Position numbers and translations under genes: made by a program. From Tetramitus jugosus (taxonomy: Eukaryota; Protista; Heterolobosea): 64,000 bases of DNA. The notes under the pieces are model-generated. The model saw nothing but the letters and a program-made list of their open reading frames with translations. It was not told the DNA's origin and searched no databases. Position 1 is the first letter of the stretch; the number at the start of each line of letters is the position of its first letter. Below are positions 1,751 through 12,410 of the stretch, one piece after another. The stretch is from positions 62,001 to 126,000 of the forward strand of contig OW569345.1 in NCBI GenBank assembly GCA_937625935.1. Direction: 5' to 3'.

Positions 1751-4700
1751 ATGAGTCACTACAACAAGAACTACGCATCAACCAGCTACAACAGCTACAA
1801 CAGCTACAACAGCTACAACAATGAATACAGCTCTGATCCCTTTGGTAATCAATACTTTCACTTTGGTTTCGGTGTTGACACTGGATTGAAGGCAGAGTTG
1901 GGACTGACAGACTTGTCTAGTCCCCTGTACAGCAACGAAAACAAGAGCTCTTCTTATGAAGAATTGGACAAGCAAAAGGGTCCACTCCATGAATTCAAAG
2001 CTAAAGTATCGAGCAAGTCAGAGATGAGTCCCACTCTGGGAAGAGGATTCGATGATTCACCCATTCCAGATCAATCAGTCTTCTCTCCTACCAACTCGAA
2101 CAGCAACAGACGAAGGAATGCCTACTAGGAGTGTGTGTGAACGACTGACCCATCACTCAACCCACACTACTAGGTGTTTTACAGATAGAAGTGACTCTGA
2201 GAGTCTTCAGATTACCTGATTCGACACGTCCATCCATACTGTACATAGAGAAATAAACCATATTCAACCTTCCATCAAAAAACTCCGATCTTTTTGTCTA
2301 TTCTTACATCAGAAATGGGCACTTGTTCACTTGGTTGCAACAATGGTCAAACCAAGCTCTTCAACTTATCGGACATTTGGACATATCTCCGTGGTGCTGG
2401 ATGCTCCACCGCTGTGAAAAACGCCGTCAAGTTTTTTTGACCAACAAGAAAGCAAAAACAAACTACTTTCAGCAATCGTTATTTCAGGACCCAAGAAGAC
2501 ATTTCATGACTATTGAGAATGCAGAAACAGACCAATTTTAACCCAGTGAGTGATTCAAGACTCAACTATTGGAGAGAAGACTTGGATTGCACCAGAACAA
2601 GATCAAGAGGATGAAGACGATAACAACAGTGATGACGATCATGATGAAAATAAGAATGAGTCATCTTCTGCCAGCTCCAACGGTTGCAAATCGTGATAAA
2701 ACCAAGAGAGAAACAAAGAATAGAACTAGCCGGAGTTTCTCAACGGGCACGACGAGTGCAGGGCGCAAATGTTTCTCCAAACATTCGTTTCCAGTGGAGA
2801 CGAGGGCAGTGAAGCATCGGACCGGTCACACAATAGTGTTGATCAGGATGATGATAGCACTGGAGCAACAGTGTCTTCTTCGACGACTCCTACCTTCAAT
2901 GCTACTATTAGTTCCTTGGTCACACGGCGTCCGTCTTCTACTTCTCAAGAACCCTTAGGAAACAGTGACAACAGTGATGATGCATTCTCTGCATCCGCAC
3001 CCATCAATGTCGACAATGTAGATAAGAAGGAGAAGTGTTGCTCCTGTTCCTTCTTCAACATGTTTGTCAACAGTTCACTCCTGATACAACCTATTTCAAG
3101 AGCATGTGCACTCAATTGTTAGAGTATGGCTATCTGTCTGATTCTCGATCTTGGTCACAATTGTCTAAAGTCTGTGTGCAAGGACTTTATGCTTGATGTT
3201 ATTTCAAATTGGCCAGCCTTTTCCGAAGCGGCTCCACAAGGTGAGATTACAGAAGGAGCCGCCTCGAAATCAAAGCTCCGGAGATCGGAATCTGTTGGTT
3301 CCTTCCTCTCTGGTCTCGGAAGAGACATGGAAATGTCAAGAAGAGGAAATCTACTCGTGTCATCAACAGAGCTTCCATTCTTTGATTTCATGTTTTACTC
3401 AACTTCTCGATTCAAGCAAGATTGGGGCAGCAAGGCTAAGCTAGGAAAGGGAGCCATTGGTTCTGTATTTCGGTCACGTCATCGCATCGATGGTCATGAA
3501 TATGCCATCAAGAGAATCAAGTTCTGTTTCCGAAATAAGCTCGAACTTGAACAAACATACGCAAAGGTTATTCGTGAGGTGAAGTTGTTGGCAAGCTTGG
3601 ATCATCCGAATATCGTGCGATACAATAAAGCATGGTTCGAACCTAGTTGGAAAGATCCTGACTATGGCGAGCCAGAAAACAGCGATGACGATGAAGAGGA
3701 TGACTTTGATTCAGAGAAAGTGGATGATTTCGAATCCAACATCAACGATGGAAGCACTGTCAATAGTGGAAGCAGTGGATTTGCTAATATAGGTGTTGAT
3801 GCAAATATCAAGAGGGCCAATGACGATTGTGCGAATAATGTTCAGTTTAGTTTTGATGAAGAGGCTGACCCTGCTTCTCCCTTCACCCCGAGCATGCCGC
3901 TCAATTCAGATAACGTCAAGTTTGAATGTTCAAGTGATGGCGATTCTGTAATTAGTCTTGTTCAACTACCCGAAGAGCCACACCCATACGACAAGTATCA
4001 ATCATCATTTATTGCTCCTTCCCCACAGGATATGAGCTACCTAGAATATGCCATCAAACAGAAGCAACAAGGAACAGCAACCAGACAACCAATAGTTCCT
4101 CACCGCTCCATAACTGAAAAGGTGACTAATCCCCAGCTGTTGTTGACAATTCAGTTCAGCAAGCAGTCAAGAATCTATTGGCCGAAATGTTCAACGAGAA
4201 GAAGAACAAGTTCGAAATGTTTTTATATATTCAATGCAACTGTGTCAACAGAATACGTTGGAGGATTACATGTGGAATCAAAATCGTGTCCAACAATGCG
4301 TTGTAGATTATGGTCAATGCATGAACTTTTTCAAGCAAATTGCCGAGGGTGTTGCCTACATTCACAGCAAGGAGCTTATGCATCGAGATCTCAAGCCAAA
4401 AAATGTATTTATTACCAATGATAACATTTTCAAGATTGGAGACTTTGGCTTGGCTAAATCAGTGAGAGACAACCTTGCTCACACAAAGTTCAACAAACAT
4501 GGCACAGAACATGGTGACAAACAAATTGTTCAACGGTCTCAGAGTCCAATTGGATCAGATTTATCGGAGCACACATGCTTCACCAGAACAATATGCCACA
4601 TCCATGTATGATGATAAGGCAGATGTGTTCACCCAGTCTGGGTGTCATTCTTTTTGAGATGTTGCATCCATTTGCTACAAAATCTGAGCGAGCTCACATA

Positions 4701-5033
4701 TTGACTGGTCTACGGTCAGGCAAGATCCCAGATTCTAAGCAAGAGAAATATCCTGAGGAGATGGAGCTTGTGAAGAGGTGTATCGATTCAGCTCCAATGT
4801 CACGTCCAACAGCGAGAGAAGTCCTCACCATAACAAAGGGCATCCTGTTGCGTAAGCAGAAGAGAAACGTGAATGGACAAAAGTCATACGCGCATCTCGA
4901 CAGCAGTGTGAACATCACTCACATTGCCCAAACGAACGACGAAGTTGTCACTACGAAACCAGTGACCAACGACTTGGATGTTCGAATGTTATTACAACAA
5001 AAGGATGATGAGATTATGCAACTTAGAGCATGA
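1751..5033 (+). pseudogene. HRI/EIF2AK1-like eIF2-alpha kinase, multiply frameshifted and apparently interrupted at its 3' end
   Basis: Motifs LGKGAIGSVF, YAIKRI, REVKLLASLDHPNIVRYNKAWFE, a long acidic insert, LYIQ(M)QLC, HRDLKPKN, KIGDFGLA, ASPEQ, SLGVILFEM and a C-terminal coiled coil are spread over several frames. An HRI-like N-terminal helix motif (LLLFLLQHVCQQ...FKSMCTQLLEYGYL) lies at ~3036-3140 in a frame the ORF track does not list. Confidence 0.8.
1783..1820 (+). repeat. 9-bp tandem repeat (CAGCTACAA)x4, encoding SYN repeats
   Basis: Directly visible in the sequence. Confidence 0.9.
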
Positions 5034-5034
5034 T

Positions 5035-5844
5035 TTATTCAATAAAAACATCAGTATCTTGCAACCGGTCAGTCACAACCAATGGAGGTGGTGCAATCTT
5101 TTCACACAACCTCTGGATCAACGCTCCTTCATAGCTGGTGATGGGCAGTGACGAGATACAGCTTGAGTGGCCCATGTCAAAACATACAAGTTTTTCAGTG
5201 GCCATGTAAACACCATACTGAATTCTACCCAACCTCAGGTAGTTACTCAGCTTGCAGGATGTTTCTGGCACAATGCAAGTGAAAGAAGTGGTGCCGTGTT
5301 CTTCCAAAAACTGCTGTCCCGCGCGAATTTCCCTGATGTCCGTGCAGAGAAGACTCACAGTCTCCTGTGTCTCCACTTCCAACTGCATTTTTGCGTAAGT
5401 AACAAAGTGCACAACCCTGTGGGGATAACGATCAAGTAGTGTGAGGAGCTTGGGACACGCGCTGCAATTGGACTTGAACAATCCATTGTTGTGGGTGCAC
5501 CGTTTCCTAACAACATAATAAAGAAAAGAGGTTAGATACTTCAATCGTTGTATGTCATTCAATACAACCAAACCAAATTTTAAGATATCCACAACATCTT
5601 CAAGATTTTTCCCCGCCAGCGAGCATGATACTCCGCTAAATTCCCTAACGGCGAGACATAGGATGGCAATCTTTCTTTCATTGAAAGACAAGGGTAAGCG
5701 AGGAGTCATTGTAATCACACCCATCGAGTCTGGAGTATCTTCCCTTTCAAATCGAAATGTCTTTCTCGTTCCATCATCCAATTCAACAACAACTGACGTG
5801 AGAGCCAGCGCATTTTTGCGGAGAAATAGGTTCAATTTTTTCAT
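5035..5844 (-). CDS. Orphan element-associated protein (ORF-L, ~269 aa), divergent from the transposase
   Basis: Intact intronless ORF; first ATG at 5844 (MKKLNLFL...). It has a Cys/His cluster (CTH...CSAC) and no recognised domain. Confidence 0.6.
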   Translation of the reverse strand: MKKLNLFLRKNALALTSVVVELDDGTRKTFRFEREDTPDSMGVITMTPRLPLSFNERKIAILCLAVREFSGVSCSLAGKNLEDVVDILKFGLVVLNDIQRLKYLTSFLYYVVRKRCTHNNGLFKSNCSACPKLLTLLDRYPHRVVHFVTYAKMQLEVETQETVSLLCTDIREIRAGQQFLEEHGTTSFTCIVPETSCKLSNYLRLGRIQYGVYMATEKLVCFDMGHSSCISSLPITSYEGALIQRLCEKIAPPPLVVTDRLQDTDVFIE

Positions 5845-5973
5845 TGCACTTGTTTTTTCATCAAGTGCGAGTAGGAAAATCCCACGAATCAGCGATGTGG
5901 GAGTTTTACACAAAGAAATTGTTGTATTCAAACAAATTTATAGCTTGGAAATAGAAGAATCGAGTAACCTACT

Positions 5974-8688
5974 ATGACAATCAACGACCAACTCCTACAG
6001 GAAGGCATTTTTGGTCCTGTCTATTCTACAAATGGTCAAATCTACGATATTACCAGTATCATGACTCAGAGAAGCCAATTTCCTTCGGAAACTAGAGAAT
6101 TTCGGCAGTATGCAAAAAGGTTCTTGCAAGAGATAGACTCATCATGGTCAGTGACAGGTGGAAGATACTACGTTTCATTGCGGGGGGTATTGCGAGTGGC
6201 ATGTAAATGTCGTTTATTCTCAATACTGGATGGATTTGCAGATTATTTTGAATCGAGTCATACTCCTAATGTTGCCACCGTCGCTAGATACTCCTCATTA
6301 GATCCCATTGATATTAGTAACATATTTTCGACAATAGAGACAGTGGGGTCGAGTTCCGGTGTGGGTATCCATAATATATTGCCCAATCGCCGATCAGAAA
6401 CTTCTAGATTAAATCGACTTAGAAGAAAAATTGTTGTCGCTCTTGTGGATATTTGCAAGCCCTATCAATCCCGAAACATGCAAGAATATCCTATTCAACA
6501 GGCTATTCTGGATATATTAATAATGTTCCTCAGTGGAAATACAGCATCTATCAAATCAAATGATTTAGTGACTGGTATTATCAATGCCCTGTGTGCTAAT
6601 TATGAAAACAGAGTCCTATCTATTCGGTTGAAGGAGATCGACAATCAATTGAAAACAATGAAAAAAGAAGCAGCATTCATGAAAAGCTATTGCAATCTCA
6701 CAGACATGCAATGGTTAAAATTGAGGTACTTCTTTGTCAAAAAGAGGAAGAATATGATATTTGTCACACCCTTCCCAACGACGATATGCGGTGCAAATTT
6801 ATACTGTCCATTTGTTAGCTTGAAGAAGGTGAAAGAGGGGGAGAATCATATCAAAGAGACTCTTTACAAACGAATGCCGCTTGGACAGATGCCGACAAAG
6901 GGCCGTGGCTTTGTTTTTACGCTAGATGATTTCACGAAATTAATCAACAAGTTCGAACAATGGAAAGATTCCAAAGTTCCTGTGGAAACAAAAAGTCATA
7001 CATGTCAACAGTTCGAAGAAGTCATGCGCTTTCATGATATTATCCCAAGCATGCTATCGAATAGCTTTTCGATGAACGAGGACGGAACCATTGCCATTAA
7101 GTTGAAGAAGTATTCTTGGCTTTTCAGCTGCGATACAAAACGAACGATGCCGTTTTCATCAAAGGAATTCCGAAAGGATAAAACTTTGGCTTGCTTGTTC
7201 CCACTATTTCTTGGAAACGCAAGACCCTCCTTTTATATGTTCACGATTATTGCATACATGGAATTAACAGAAACCCAAAATAACATGCAGTGGTTGAATC
7301 GATACTTGTTCGAAAACTACTTTGATGCGTTCAAGAAATACTATTTGTTGGTACAACGATGTGATGGAACTCGCGAACTAGTGTTGTTCGATCTGTTCTT
7401 ATGTTCAGATTACAAAGAACTGGCAGCGTTCTTTGGGGAGCTCACGAAATCATGTCTTGGGTGTGAACATGATTTGGACAATAATCTTATTGGTCGCATC
7501 AAAACTCTCAATGACTACCCTTCCTCAGCATCTAAAACGTATGGACCAGATCGGGTAGTCTTTGACATAACACATTGTTGCTCAGCAATAGGGAAAAGCT
7601 TGCGAGATCAGATTGTACATGATGCGATAGCAACAGACAAGTACCAATTTGTTCAACGTTTAAGGGACACTCCAGTATATCAGCAATACCTGCTAACTGG
7701 AGATGCTTATAGTTGCGAGATCGAAGATTATCAGTCATTTTTCCGGATATGCGAGGAGTATAACTACTCGTACAGTGTGTCTAACATTTTTGAGTCGGCA
7801 AATATCTTGTGTTCATTATTGAGTGAACGTACTTCAACTGTACTGCCAACAGTGTTTCCAACCCTCATGATGGTTCAACAACTGCTCGATAGATTAGGCA
7901 TTAACTTCGATGTTTTGTCTGAAAAAACAGCGACAAAGAGAATCATGACTCCATGCTACGCTGCTTCCTTAGTTCTGTTGATATGGCCAAAAATTGAATC
8001 AATGATTAAGAGTAATGATTGTGTTTCAAAACTGGCTATGCGCAAATGGATAGAAGCAATGAAAAGTCATTGCCCAACTCAAGATCAAGTTTCAAAAGTG
8101 AAGTACTGGGCTTCAGTTGCATTTGATGATTGGTCTTTCTTCAAAAAGAGAACATATCGTATGTTATCCAAGCATATCACAAATACTTTCATCGATGGTG
8201 TCAATAGCGGGTTGTTGCCATGGAAAATGAATACAGAAGGAATAGAACGTCTTAACTTTATGACGAGTAATACCAAAACAAATCGCCGCACTCTTGACGA
8301 TACAACGTTAGCTCCCTTTTTGAACGGTACAGAAGAATTTCAAGATTTGGTATTGGATGAAGACAATGAAATATCGGATAATCATCTGGGACCACATTAC
8401 CTACTCCAGGTGTTGTCTAAATTTGATGTCCGATGTGAAGCACACAAGAACTACGATAGAACTCATAGTGAGTCTCTTACAACGACAAGAGTCAAGAGGC
8501 TTAGTCAGAGATTGGATAAGAATAATGTATTACAGTGGTCGCTGTTTGATCAGGGTATAGTTGAACAACTAAATTCTCAAGTTTCTAATCTCCGACATGG
8601 CATTAGACCAATTCGAGATGAACAGATGGAGGATACTTATCAGGTTGAATCAGATAGAGCTGACCTTGTCGAGAATAGTTGGGCATAG
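5974..8688 (+). CDS. RAG1/Transib/Chapaev-like DDE transposase (904 aa)
   Basis: Ordered motifs: AAFMKSYCNLTDMQWLKLR (aa 233-251), FSCD387, LTE433TQNNM, FLCSD479YKELAAFFG..C494xxC497, D531ITH534, H734, NTEGIE758RLN. These match mouse RAG1 D600, E662, D708, C727/C730, H795, H942 and E962 in order and context. Confidence 0.8.
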   Translation: MTINDQLLQEGIFGPVYSTNGQIYDITSIMTQRSQFPSETREFRQYAKRFLQEIDSSWSVTGGRYYVSLRGVLRVACKCRLFSILDGFADYFESSHTPNVATVARYSSLDPIDISNIFSTIETVGSSSGVGIHNILPNRRSETSRLNRLRRKIVVALVDICKPYQSRNMQEYPIQQAILDILIMFLSGNTASIKSNDLVTGIINALCANYENRVLSIRLKEIDNQLKTMKKEAAFMKSYCNLTDMQWLKLRYFFVKKRKNMIFVTPFPTTICGANLYCPFVSLKKVKEGENHIKETLYKRMPLGQMPTKGRGFVFTLDDFTKLINKFEQWKDSKVPVETKSHTCQQFEEVMRFHDIIPSMLSNSFSMNEDGTIAIKLKKYSWLFSCDTKRTMPFSSKEFRKDKTLACLFPLFLGNARPSFYMFTIIAYMELTETQNNMQWLNRYLFENYFDAFKKYYLLVQRCDGTRELVLFDLFLCSDYKELAAFFGELTKSCLGCEHDLDNNLIGRIKTLNDYPSSASKTYGPDRVVFDITHCCSAIGKSLRDQIVHDAIATDKYQFVQRLRDTPVYQQYLLTGDAYSCEIEDYQSFFRICEEYNYSYSVSNIFESANILCSLLSERTSTVLPTVFPTLMMVQQLLDRLGINFDVLSEKTATKRIMTPCYAASLVLLIWPKIESMIKSNDCVSKLAMRKWIEAMKSHCPTQDQVSKVKYWASVAFDDWSFFKKRTYRMLSKHITNTFIDGVNSGLLPWKMNTEGIERLNFMTSNTKTNRRTLDDTTLAPFLNGTEEFQDLVLDEDNEISDNHLGPHYLLQVLSKFDVRCEAHKNYDRTHSESLTTTRVKRLSQRLDKNNVLQWSLFDQGIVEQLNSQVSNLRHGIRPIRDEQMEDTYQVESDRADLVENSWA

Positions 8689-8693
8689 TTAAT

Positions 8694-9440
8694 TTATTTT
8701 TTGTATTGTTTTCTCGTGTTTTTTAAGCTAATGCTTTCACCAGCCTTGATGCTACAGTAATTAAGTATTGGTCGTCCATGGCAATCCTTAATGAAGAGCC
8801 GAAACTTCAACCGCAATCCCAAATCTCCATTCATACCATTGTGAAAATAAATATATAGTGGAGCACGGGAAGTACAATTGGTTCCATCCTTCCAGGTGCG
8901 CAGAGGGTAATTCTGTCCAAAACAAGAGCGAAACATTTGATAGTTGGAGATAACTCTCTGTCGTTCAATGTCCGATCGAACTATTTTCCTTTGTAAAATA
9001 GCTCGAGGCAAATGTCCAAACAAGTGATCAAACACTTGCTTCGTCATCGGTACAGTGCTAGTGGTGACAAAGTCGTCATAGGGATGAGCTTTCCTCATTG
9101 TGGATATCATTTGAATGATCGTTGTTCGCAATTGAAATTTGAGTTCAAAAGCCAAAAATTCATCCACCTTTGGAATAGGATTTCGTTCAATAATTAACTC
9201 CTTTTGGTGTGTTCGCAAGCGAACGACAGCATCTTCGAAACTTGCTTGCACCAGGTCTCTGAAGAAACTGTCTCTTTCGTCGTTGGTGTTCAAATCATAG
9301 TTCCTTTCAGTCATCTGCTTGTATTTTTCATAAACACTGATGATGGAGACATCGTGACTTTCCCACTGCATTTGCTGGTTTTCACAAAGAGGAAAGCGCG
9401 TCATCAACGTTCCAATACTGGGATCAAGCTCGTGTAACAT
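8694..9440 (-). CDS. Orphan element-associated protein (ORF-R, 248 aa), convergent with the transposase
   Basis: Intact intronless ORF whose stop lies 5 nt from the transposase stop; basic C-terminus; no recognised domain. Confidence 0.6.
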   Translation of the reverse strand: MLHELDPSIGTLMTRFPLCENQQMQWESHDVSIISVYEKYKQMTERNYDLNTNDERDSFFRDLVQASFEDAVVRLRTHQKELIIERNPIPKVDEFLAFELKFQLRTTIIQMISTMRKAHPYDDFVTTSTVPMTKQVFDHLFGHLPRAILQRKIVRSDIERQRVISNYQMFRSCFGQNYPLRTWKDGTNCTSRAPLYIYFHNGMNGDLGLRLKFRLFIKDCHGRPILNYCSIKAGESISLKNTRKQYKK

Positions 9441-9571
9441 AGTTGTGTTCTTTTACAGCTCCACCTCTCCAATCAAAGCCATTCATGTTGTGTCGTTGTT
9501 TTGCTTGGATTCCTTTATTTTTGAAAGAGGGACCCTCTATTTTTCGAATGCTGCACGGACTTTCAAAATGA

Positions 9572-9643
9572 ATTGAAGAGAGAAGACACTACAAGATGTT
9601 GATGTCTCTTCCGTCCGAAGAGTCAACACTTCCATCTACCTGA
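9572..9643 (+). pseudogene. Probable displaced 3' tail of the eIF2-alpha kinase
   Basis: Reads IEERRHYKMLMSLPSEESTLPST*, which continues the coiled coil ...QQKDDEIMQLRA in frame if the island and one ATGA are removed. Confidence 0.45.
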
Positions 9644-9761
9644 TCTGCATGGGCTAGGCTGACTGGCGCTTCAGTTGAGGAACTTCCAGATCAAAAAAAC
9701 GAAAAAAAGCTTAGCGTCGAAAACACAACCAAACATCCAATAAGAAAAAGTATTAAAGCAA

Positions 9762-12410
9762 ATGAACAACAACAATAACATTTCTCAGATCAATCCCATG
9801 TTCATTCCACACAGTACTCAACACGAATCCATGTTCATTGGTCGTCTGTTGAGTGCCCACAAGATGATTTGTCAATACAGTGATCCTCTGTTGCAAGCAA
9901 GAGCCCTTTCTGTGATCCCAGAGGACAAGCTACGGTACCAAGCCCAGTTAAAGTATGAACAAGAAAATCGTCAACCACAAGATTCCATTGCACAGCATGA
10001 CATGGATCACTATGTCATTAAAGAGCTGCTCCACTGGTTCAAATCAGAGTTTTTCAAGTGGGTAGATGCTCCTCCGTGTGATCACTGTGGTCACTCACAG
10101 ACAAAGGCCATTGGTCGCAGTGGGCCCAACACTGCTCAGGAGAGAGAAGGCCTGGCAAGTGTCGTTGAAGTCTATCAGTGCTCTTCGTGCCAACAAATGA
10201 CTCGTTTTCCTAGATACAATCACGCGAGTAGGTTGTTGGAGACGAGAAGGGGTCGTTGTGGCGAATGGGCACAATGTTTTACACTCATGTGCATTGCAAT
10301 GGGATACAAGGCTCGTTTTGTGAACGATTGGACAGATCATGTGTGGACAGAGGTGTTTATTGAACGGAGATGGCAACACGCCGATAGTTGTGAAGCGACG
10401 TTGGATGCGAGTCAAATGTATGAATCTGGTTGGGGCAAGAAGCTGAACATGATTGTGGCAGCGGGTTTTGACGAGTTGGTCGATGTGACTCGAAGATATA
10501 CGAAACAATTCTATACGGAGGAGTTTCAAATGAGAAGAAGACAACTGGGAGTCTCAGAAGACTTTGTTGCGCAGTGCTTGACCAATATGAATTATCAGTT
10601 GCAGTTTGTAATGACGCCGCAGAAGATTCAAGAGCTGAATTTCATGCAGACGCAAGAGCAGGAAGAGTTGAAGCAGACGCAACGAGATGCAATGGATTCG
10701 ATCAAGGTGGAAGAATTGAGAGGTAGACAATCTGGTTCAAAGCAGTGGGTAGAGAGCAGAGGAGAAGGTGGTAGTTCATCCACGGAGAAGAAATCCATGT
10801 GCATTACTCCACCCATAGGCGTCGATATCAAGCAATTAGATTCATGGAGCCGCGATCACCCCAATCTATTCCAAAGCGAGAGTTCAAGCTTTTCATTCCT
10901 AGCATCGGCAAGACAGTTTAGAGAGGGTGATGAACCATGTGCACGATTAACTCCCAACCAGACATCACAAGTCGGAGCAGTTTGGTATCAGAAAAAACTG
11001 GACATATCTCAACTGGGATCACTCTACATATCTTTCACATTCCGAACAGTGGGAAGAGGAGCTGATGGATTTGCATTTGTGTTGCAAGCAGATTCATCGA
11101 GTGCCATTGGTGAGGGTGGATGTGGCATAGGATACCAAGGTATCAAGAATAGTGTGGCAATAGAGTTTGATACCTATTGTACGTACGATCGATGCAATGA
11201 CCCCGATGGCAATCACATATCGATTCAGACGAGATATTCAGAACCCAATTCTGCTCATCATCACTACTCTCTTTCTTGTACCAAGAATTTGGAATCGGAC
11301 TATGGAGTCATGTTGAATGATGGCAAAATTCACCATGCTAAGCTTGTGTATGATCATTCAACAAAGAAAATGCATGTCTCAGTAGATGGCCTTTGGATTC
11401 TCAGAGATGTTCAGATCGATTTGAACAAGGTATTGAATCAGAGTAGTTGCTGGATGGGTTTTACTGCTGCAACAGGTGGATTATGTCAGGCTCATGATAT
11501 TCTAACATTTACCACATGCTCGACTACCACAGTTGGTGGTGAATCGAGTCGCAACCGTACTGAATATGTGCTCTATAGTGCAGGCAACGTTGCAGGAATT
11601 AAGAAAAAGTTAATCGAGTTCAATTCATCATTGCTTGATCCTTCCACAGCCTTGAGTGGGGTTGAACTGAGCACCTTGACAAATGTCATGAACTGTCTTG
11701 ATAGTGTATCTCACTCCTTCAAGTGGAACGATGAACTACATGGTATTGTATTCAAGATTTTGGATACATGGCCTCAAGCAAAGCACTTCCCAGTGCTAGA
11801 CTTGATTCGATTGTGTTGCCATAGATATTCCACTGCAATGTGTGATTACTATTCTCAGCGGAACTCTTTCTGTTCAAAGTTACTATTGGACAAAAAAGCG
11901 CAGCCTGCTGCAAACCGAATGATTCTCTATCGTTTGCTTTGCAATGCACTGGGTTCAACAGAATTAAGACTCAAAGTAATCATGCCTGAAATTCGTGTGA
12001 TCACTGACAATGTTTTGGAGGAGAGTTCTTCTTGGTCTCTCTCTGCAAGTGACAAAGCACCAGTTCGAGAGCCATTCTTTGCCTTTGTTCATAATCTTGT
12101 ATTGATGCTTAGTGAAATCAAGGAACATGAAGAAGATGTCTTGGTTCAAGTACTAAATGCGGAGATATCCTTGTTGAAGCAAGAGCTGGGGTCTAGTGAT
12201 TTGGAAGACAAGAATATCCATCTGATGCTCAGATCTCTCGTACATTCCCTCCAGATACGACCTGACGAAGAGGCAGAAGAAGGTTCCGTCATCAAGTTCA
12301 TTTTGATTTCAATGGACATTCTGGAGTTACTTACTGCTATAGCTTCCAATCCGAAGATCTCATCTACCACGCAACAGTTTGCGCAAAAGGTGTCAGATCT
12401 TTTACAGTAA
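9762..12410 (+). CDS. NGLY1: Peptide:N-glycanase with an L-type lectin domain and a C-terminal PUL domain
   Basis: LLHWFKSEFFKWVD, two CxxC zinc motifs, RFPRYN, catalytic triad RGRC166GEWA / DH193VWTE / AD208SCE and YESGWGKKL. Lectin motifs GADGFAF, VAIEFDT, GFTAATGG; PUL motif FPVLDLIRL. Confidence 0.9.
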   Translation: MNNNNNISQINPMFIPHSTQHESMFIGRLLSAHKMICQYSDPLLQARALSVIPEDKLRYQAQLKYEQENRQPQDSIAQHDMDHYVIKELLHWFKSEFFKWVDAPPCDHCGHSQTKAIGRSGPNTAQEREGLASVVEVYQCSSCQQMTRFPRYNHASRLLETRRGRCGEWAQCFTLMCIAMGYKARFVNDWTDHVWTEVFIERRWQHADSCEATLDASQMYESGWGKKLNMIVAAGFDELVDVTRRYTKQFYTEEFQMRRRQLGVSEDFVAQCLTNMNYQLQFVMTPQKIQELNFMQTQEQEELKQTQRDAMDSIKVEELRGRQSGSKQWVESRGEGGSSSTEKKSMCITPPIGVDIKQLDSWSRDHPNLFQSESSSFSFLASARQFREGDEPCARLTPNQTSQVGAVWYQKKLDISQLGSLYISFTFRTVGRGADGFAFVLQADSSSAIGEGGCGIGYQGIKNSVAIEFDTYCTYDRCNDPDGNHISIQTRYSEPNSAHHHYSLSCTKNLESDYGVMLNDGKIHHAKLVYDHSTKKMHVSVDGLWILRDVQIDLNKVLNQSSCWMGFTAATGGLCQAHDILTFTTCSTTTVGGESSRNRTEYVLYSAGNVAGIKKKLIEFNSSLLDPSTALSGVELSTLTNVMNCLDSVSHSFKWNDELHGIVFKILDTWPQAKHFPVLDLIRLCCHRYSTAMCDYYSQRNSFCSKLLLDKKAQPAANRMILYRLLCNALGSTELRLKVIMPEIRVITDNVLEESSSWSLSASDKAPVREPFFAFVHNLVLMLSEIKEHEEDVLVQVLNAEISLLKQELGSSDLEDKNIHLMLRSLVHSLQIRPDEEAEEGSVIKFILISMDILELLTAIASNPKISSTTQQFAQKVSDLLQ

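Follow-up and report, generated by a model that had tools for sequence, protein, structure and literature searches.

RAG2 is the sole partner of RAG1/Transib enzymes described in the cited literature (PMC10629977, PMC9435367, PMC4411706), and its capture is regarded as the step that created the RAG-like (RAGL) transposons (PMC10629977, PMC9435367). Members of the CMCT clade, which includes ESTA and Plavaka, have C(2)C and H(3-4)H motifs that fall after the second D and before the final E of the transposase (PMC12730594). Here we describe an element present in a stretch of 64,000 nucleotides from Tetramitus jugosus (contig OW569345.1, positions 62,001 to 126,000; hereafter the window), in which a RAG1/Transib-like transposase gene, whose product resembles the enzyme that rearranges antibody genes, is flanked by two orphan open reading frames (ORFs), ORF-L and ORF-R. 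The element is a mobile unit with short terminal inverted repeats (TIRs), which contains three genes under selection and captured host DNA, and ORF-R remains linked to the transposase in distant families. Contig codes (C2, C6, C22 and so on) refer to the 26.35-Mb, 56-contig assembly G000, the window being G000:C2:62001-126000.

Gene arrangement and limits of the unit

A preliminary description of this DNA, made from the sequence alone, had proposed a three-gene element occupying 5034-9567, next to a broken host gene. The gene arrangement was re-read from the sequence and the coordinates agree: ORF-L on the minus strand, a 129-bp gap, the transposase on the plus strand, a 5-bp gap, and ORF-R on the minus strand, convergent to the transposase (Table 1). 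The element is potentially autonomous, since all three frames are open, with zero internal stops. Host genes are intron-poor in this assembly, and the GC content of the element is near that of the host.

The three ORFs were found again, in the same order, on C6. DNA identity between this copy and the window spans about 2356 to 9581 and breaks off on both sides; together with the TIRs, this replaces the limits first proposed by 2357-9580. Nor are the orphans single-copy host genes: both accompany the transposase on C6, and among decayed copies ORF-L stands beside it on C24 and C43, and ORF-R on C35. Comparing copies revealed purifying selection on all three ORFs. For the transposase, compared with C6, the ratio of nonsynonymous to synonymous substitutions (dN/dS) was 0.19 (p=6e-9). 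Five pooled fragments of ORF-L gave 0.35 (p=6e-5) and two of ORF-R gave 0.38 (p=0.003), the pooled comparisons sharing the window sequence and not being fully independent.

Both full copies have CTCTTCAA termini, and their ends read CT..AG. Long TIRs were rejected on a sequence check. The inverted repeat is perfect over 8 bp. Such inverted ends occurred in 104 of 200,000 random 7.2-kb segments (a chance of about 5e-4, with ends defined independently and 2 nt of slack). One read contig crosses the left junction of the unit with 0 differences. At the other end, the independent Logan contig L062, whose ORF-R is 54% identical, has CTCTTCAATT 153 bp upstream of the ORF-R start, versus 140 bp in the window.

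Several features were observed just outside the unit. Counting from the base with which the left TIR begins, a 15-bp motif (2331-2345) stands 26 bp upstream in the window and 35 bp upstream in C6, in flanks that are otherwise unrelated; it is unexplained, and could reflect a target preference or the remnant of a longer end. Beyond the right end, 63 bp (9591-9653) match C15:285204-285266 at 87% and hold a hairpin with another instance of the TIR core CTCTTC in its stem; no Rfam hit was obtained. This hairpin was rejected as a significant structure (fold z -0.62). A CMC-like transposase fragment, identified by eye, directly adjoins the C6 copy (L040:7841-8338).

ORF-R and the transposase lineage

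Judged from sequence, ORF-R is a partner kept throughout this transposase lineage, because homologues about 30% identical to it accompany two further transposase families, whose transposases are 21-24% identical. Four database homologues were found (P0007-P0010); against P0008 and P0009 synonymous sites are saturated, with dN of 0.39-0.45.

In family B (C47 and C50; transposase P0002), the gene order is a transposase-Ulp1 gene, a convergent PHD-PHD gene and the ORF-R homologue. Its loci include L048:900-4950 (C47) and the metagenome contig L051 (ENA ERZ23579034), which ends before the ORF-R gene and whose positions 1-106 match high-copy repeats on C53 and C55 at about 90%. A fusion of ORF-R and PHD in this family appears unlikely; P0010 ends without a PHD, and the C47 copy is decayed. 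The separately encoded PHD recalls that of RAG2. In family C (L047:4415-6582 on C11, L049:4403-5630 on C40, and the JGI contig L061), the ORF-R homologue and the transposase share a strand, the former lying immediately upstream, and both genomic copies (C11 and C40) are internally deleted. A Harbinger-like DDE fragment was recognised by eye near the C40 copy (L049:2421-3098).

In keeping with the lack of kelch repeats first noted by eye, no Pfam kelch matches were found for either orphan. In the ORF-R model (pLDDT, the predicted local distance difference test, of 68), the N-half is helical and the C-half alpha/beta, the latter basic with an isoelectric point of 10.1. A fold search with this model gave no known match (best Z 4.6, best TM 0.34) and no propeller, so that a kelch or propeller fold was rejected for ORF-R. 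An ESM search with ORF-R gave no result.

The transposase contains, conserved in order, D387, D479, C494xxC497, D531xxH534, H734 and E758, with D387/D479/E758 as the candidate triad, by motif. We take these motifs to correspond to RAG1 residues. D387 and D479 are conserved in families A (that of the window) and B, and E758 in all three. C494xxC497, a C(2)C after the second D, is kept in the two relatives P0001 (50% identical, broken, from GCA_037189345.1) and P0002 (24% identical, 1439 amino acids, with a C-terminal Ulp1 domain and a weak Plavaka match, E 0.03). Before the last E, family C has a full H(3)H, of which family A keeps the second His (H734). With a CxxC and a late His lying after the second D and ahead of the final E, the enzyme fits the CMCT definition (PMC12730594), the first His apart.

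Many RAG1 clusters were among the closest matches in an ESM feature search (0.88-0.90). It is on motif order and ESM features that the likeness to RAG1/Transib rests, and the transposase probably has the RAG1 fold. A Pfam search gave no match at E<=1 for any of the three ORFs, and a word-based search for transposase homologues gave no result.

ORF-L, a family-specific accessory

ORF-L has its ATG at 5844 and its stop at 5035-5037, in a frame open to 5931. It was found with the family A copies on C6, C24, C43 and C25; none was detected beside families B and C in the loci examined, and a word-based search found no database homologue. A distant homologue, 23% identical and sharing the motif CxH-x8/9-CxxC, scored 102, whereas 3,000 shuffles reached at most 67. 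It lies inside a TIR-bounded MULE-like element (L050:4530-9118, i.e. G000:C50, about 120.5-125.1 kb), apparently intact, with TIRs of ~52 nt and a SAP-Ulp1-DDE-SWIM transposase of 1153 amino acids, whose 5′ end recurs four times (twice on C23, then on C13 and C50). A further homologue is present at C51:191636-192010. Because it is limited to family A and has a homologue in the MULE-like element, ORF-L looks like a swappable accessory, and an exchange between the two elements is likely.

The preliminary description can now be divided. A multi-gene RAG1/Transib-like element with accessories other than RAG2 is supported, because the orphans co-occur with the transposase and are under purifying selection. 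The orphans differ in status: ORF-R is found throughout the lineage, ORF-L is specific to one family and common to a MULE-like element, and an obligate three-component machine is therefore not supported.

The 129-bp divergent region would act as a promoter. In run X8, which is RNA-like by its uneven cover (no run is recorded as RNA), one contig spans 4758-5830, from ORF-L into the kinase cargo described below, and nothing falls on 5840-7800; these contigs show neither strand nor level. If X8 is RNA, ORF-L is transcribed, with a 3′ end antisense into the cargo, which we regard as a lead only.

Captured host DNA

What had been described as an adjacent broken host gene is a kinase fragment inside the unit, truncated at both ends, with an intact parent on C22. 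That parent is an ORF of 1233 codons with a weak match to the HRI helical domain. The fragment carries 10 indels, and joined to it are 56 bp from a xanthine-dehydrogenase-like gene, whose source on C34 is a long ORF identified by eye from 2Fe-2S and molybdopterin-type motifs. Fragments of host genes are thus found inside TIRs with intact parents elsewhere (the C22 kinase and the C34 gene), as in Pack-type elements. A host kinase broken by insertion was rejected, given the intact parent on C22 and the fact that the fragment moves with the unit. Reads branch as expected at 2571, 2607 and 5030, in a groundwater metagenome as well as in the run that is probably the source.

The cargo copies of the window and C6 share 44 substitutions compared to C22, with 11 and 20 private ones respectively, and because of these shared differences we conclude that a single capture took place, before the copy moved. 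Because the differences between the fragment and the C22 kinase are mostly synonymous (dN/dS 0.22), they suggest capture from another allele than that of C22. Recombination between element lineages is hinted at as well, because the transposase has a dS of 0.06 against C6, compared with a difference of just about 1.2% in the shared cargo.

Beyond the left end, a 125-amino-acid ORF (1751-2128) has very high depth in X8; this gene is separate from the kinase. On the right, 9762-12410 encodes a fusion in which a PNGase-like transglutaminase domain is combined with L-type lectin and PUL domains. An Rfam search of 2000-10000 gave no match, and scans of metagenome, viral and prokaryotic collections for related loci gave no result.

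Table 1. Features of the element, in window positions.
Feature	Position	Strand	Evidence
Complete 7,224-bp mobile unit (family A)	2357-9580	none	~97% shared with G000:C6:8816-15744, flanks unrelated on both sides
Left TIR, CTCTTCAA	2357-2369	+	8/8 perfect; 11/13 versus right end
Left subterminal region	2370-2551	none	2405-2537 also on C24, adjoining decayed transposase and ORF-L fragments, no kinase
Captured 56-bp piece of xanthine-dehydrogenase-like gene (C34)	2552-2607	+	90% match; loose ends 2571/2607
Captured frameshifted fragment of HRI-like eIF2-alpha kinase	2599-5030	+	Codons 407-1223 of 1233; 96% to intact single ORF on C22
ORF-L, 269 amino acids, accessory gene, CxH-x8-CxxC motif (residues 116-130)	5035-5844	-	dN/dS; homologue in MULE-like element on C50
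Divergent intergenic region, 129 bp, two hairpins	5845-5973	none	Fold z -2.98
DDE transposase, 904 amino acids, CMCT-like/RAG1-like	5974-8688	+	ESM features; motif conservation across three families
ORF-R, 248 amino acids, partner gene	8694-9440	-	Homologues P0007-P0010 and on C11, C40, C47, C50
Right TIR	9568-9580	-	CTCTTCAATT at equivalent place on independent contig L062

Proposed mechanism and alternatives

We think it rather probable that the element moves by cut and paste and belongs to the CMCT group of DNA transposons, its features coming nearest to those of RAG1/Transib, with ORF-R as a dedicated co-factor and ORF-L as an optional accessory. Catalysis, binding and all partner functions we infer as follows. 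The DDE enzyme would bind the CTCTTCAA ends and excise the 7.2-kb unit. ORF-R would be a functional stand-in for RAG2, though unrelated to it, and because its C-terminal domain is basic it is suggested to bind nucleic acid, in the transpososome or for target capture. ORF-L, probably zinc-binding, would serve as a chromatin or silencing accessory that passes from one transposon superfamily to another, unrelated one. For the kinase and dehydrogenase fragments we envisage a single copying event, probably a template switch in the course of gap repair (Pack-type capture), after which they were carried with the element.

A series of observations weighs against this proposal. Only two full copies exist (the window and C6), and that of C6 is broken by a 302-bp deletion and frameshifts. 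No target site duplication is present in either, the flanks being CCAAG/AGAAG in the window and GGTCG/AAAAG in C6. The first His of the H(3-4)H is a Met in families A (Met730) and B. ESM recognition reached 2071, below 2300, with fewer than 170 shared features; the AlphaFold model of the transposase has a pLDDT of 42, and a fold search gave no meaningful match at that quality; no PDB sequence match was found, whether single proteins or profiles served as queries. Finally, in GCA_037189345.1, neither ORF-L nor ORF-R is detectable next to the decayed 50%-identical transposase, and an ORF-R homologue stands on a 3.8-kb contig without a transposase match.

The main alternative is that both orphans are host-manipulating passengers, acting as anti-silencing or expression helpers like TET/JBP of fungal CMCT elements; ORF-R would have been long kept without being a transpososome subunit. 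The changing position and orientation of ORF-R (convergent in both A and B, tandem and upstream in family C) go in this direction, as do the ORF-L family member in a MULE-like element, the additional Ulp1 and PHD-PHD modules of family B, and the movement of accessory genes between superfamilies in fungi (PMC12730594). However, the orientation of RAG2L varies too in true RAGL elements (PMC9435367), and all genomic matches of ORF-R whose surroundings were read or inferred, two weak matches aside, accompany this transposase lineage, and not one accompanies a different superfamily. We consider the passenger explanation unlikely, while keeping it as the first competitor.

The co-factor reading could also be pushed further. 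The locus would then belong to a separate RAG1-like lineage with ORF-R as an obligate second subunit, possibly of a new fold, with duplication-free insertion and swappable chromatin modules (ORF-L, PHD-PHD, Ulp1), and a two-subunit recombinase of the RAG1/RAG2 type would have arisen in nature a second time, independently. This extension is doubtful.

Alternatively, the C2/C6 pair might come from a segmental duplication, or from ectopic recombination of a smaller element together with a neighbouring kinase pseudogene, the real element measuring about 4.6 kb and the 8-bp repeat being incidental. The missing target duplication and the 15-bp motif immediately outside the left end of both copies would agree with such an event, and the C6 copy is close to a contig end, beside another transposase fragment. 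Yet the inverted repeat coincides with the limits at both ends, which chance would rarely produce (p about 5e-4), and the right-end motif is conserved on L062. Moreover, the left subterminal region occurs with transposase fragments and no kinase on C24, and the kinase lacks both of its ends and is joined to part of another gene. We find a duplication of this kind very improbable. Least probable of all is an immobilised or domesticated gene cluster retained for a host function, to which the single intact copy, the strong purifying selection and the loss of one canonical zinc ligand would be suited, but which many decayed and dispersed copies, retained TIRs, a 97% sister copy at another site and a pseudogene cargo speak against.

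An unrelated partner kept across transposases only 21-24% identical would offer a test of whether a second subunit is a recurring need of this enzyme type, and of what it contributes. The window copy, with its three intact genes and defined ends, makes an assay feasible. The element also illustrates the capture of host genes and the likely exchange of one accessory gene with a MULE-like element.

Comparison with known systems

As in ProtoRAG/RAGL elements, a RAG1-like DDE enzyme is linked here to a second, separately encoded partner (PMC10629977, PMC9435367). That partner is convergent in most RAGL and tandem upstream in the RAGL of Aureococcus; similarly, it is convergent in families A and B and tandem upstream in C. 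Unlike the six-bladed kelch partner related to RAG2, however, ORF-R has no kelch, and instead of a CAC heptamer and 5-bp duplications we found CTCTTCAA ends, no duplication, a third gene and host cargo. Transib elements share with this one the motif order D, D, CxxC, DxxH, H, ExxN and short TIRs (PMC4411706, PMC9435367), but known Transibs encode one protein, start with CAC and produce 5-bp duplications, whereas here three ORFs are under selection and none of these ends is present. Given the fold of the partner, the sequence of the ends, the target duplication and the number of genes, membership of either group was rejected (PMC10629977, PMC9435367, PMC4411706). In a limited literature search, which is not proof of absence, no title or abstract was found reporting host-gene capture in Transib.

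Pack-MULEs and other cargo-carrying TIR elements are known to enclose chimeric fragments from more than one host gene (PMC5861414); unlike in Pack-MULEs, the carrier here is RAG1/Transib-like with intact genes. With the CMCT clade, the element shares a DDE triad in RNase H order, by motif, and the C(2)C after the second D, and the sharing of ORF-L with a MULE-like element parallels the fungal accessory genes that move between superfamilies (PMC12730594). It differs by its CT..AG ends without duplication, where that clade has mostly CA..TG ends and 2-5-bp duplications, and by accessories unrelated to TET/JBP. On balance, the element is best filed within or next to the CMCT clade.

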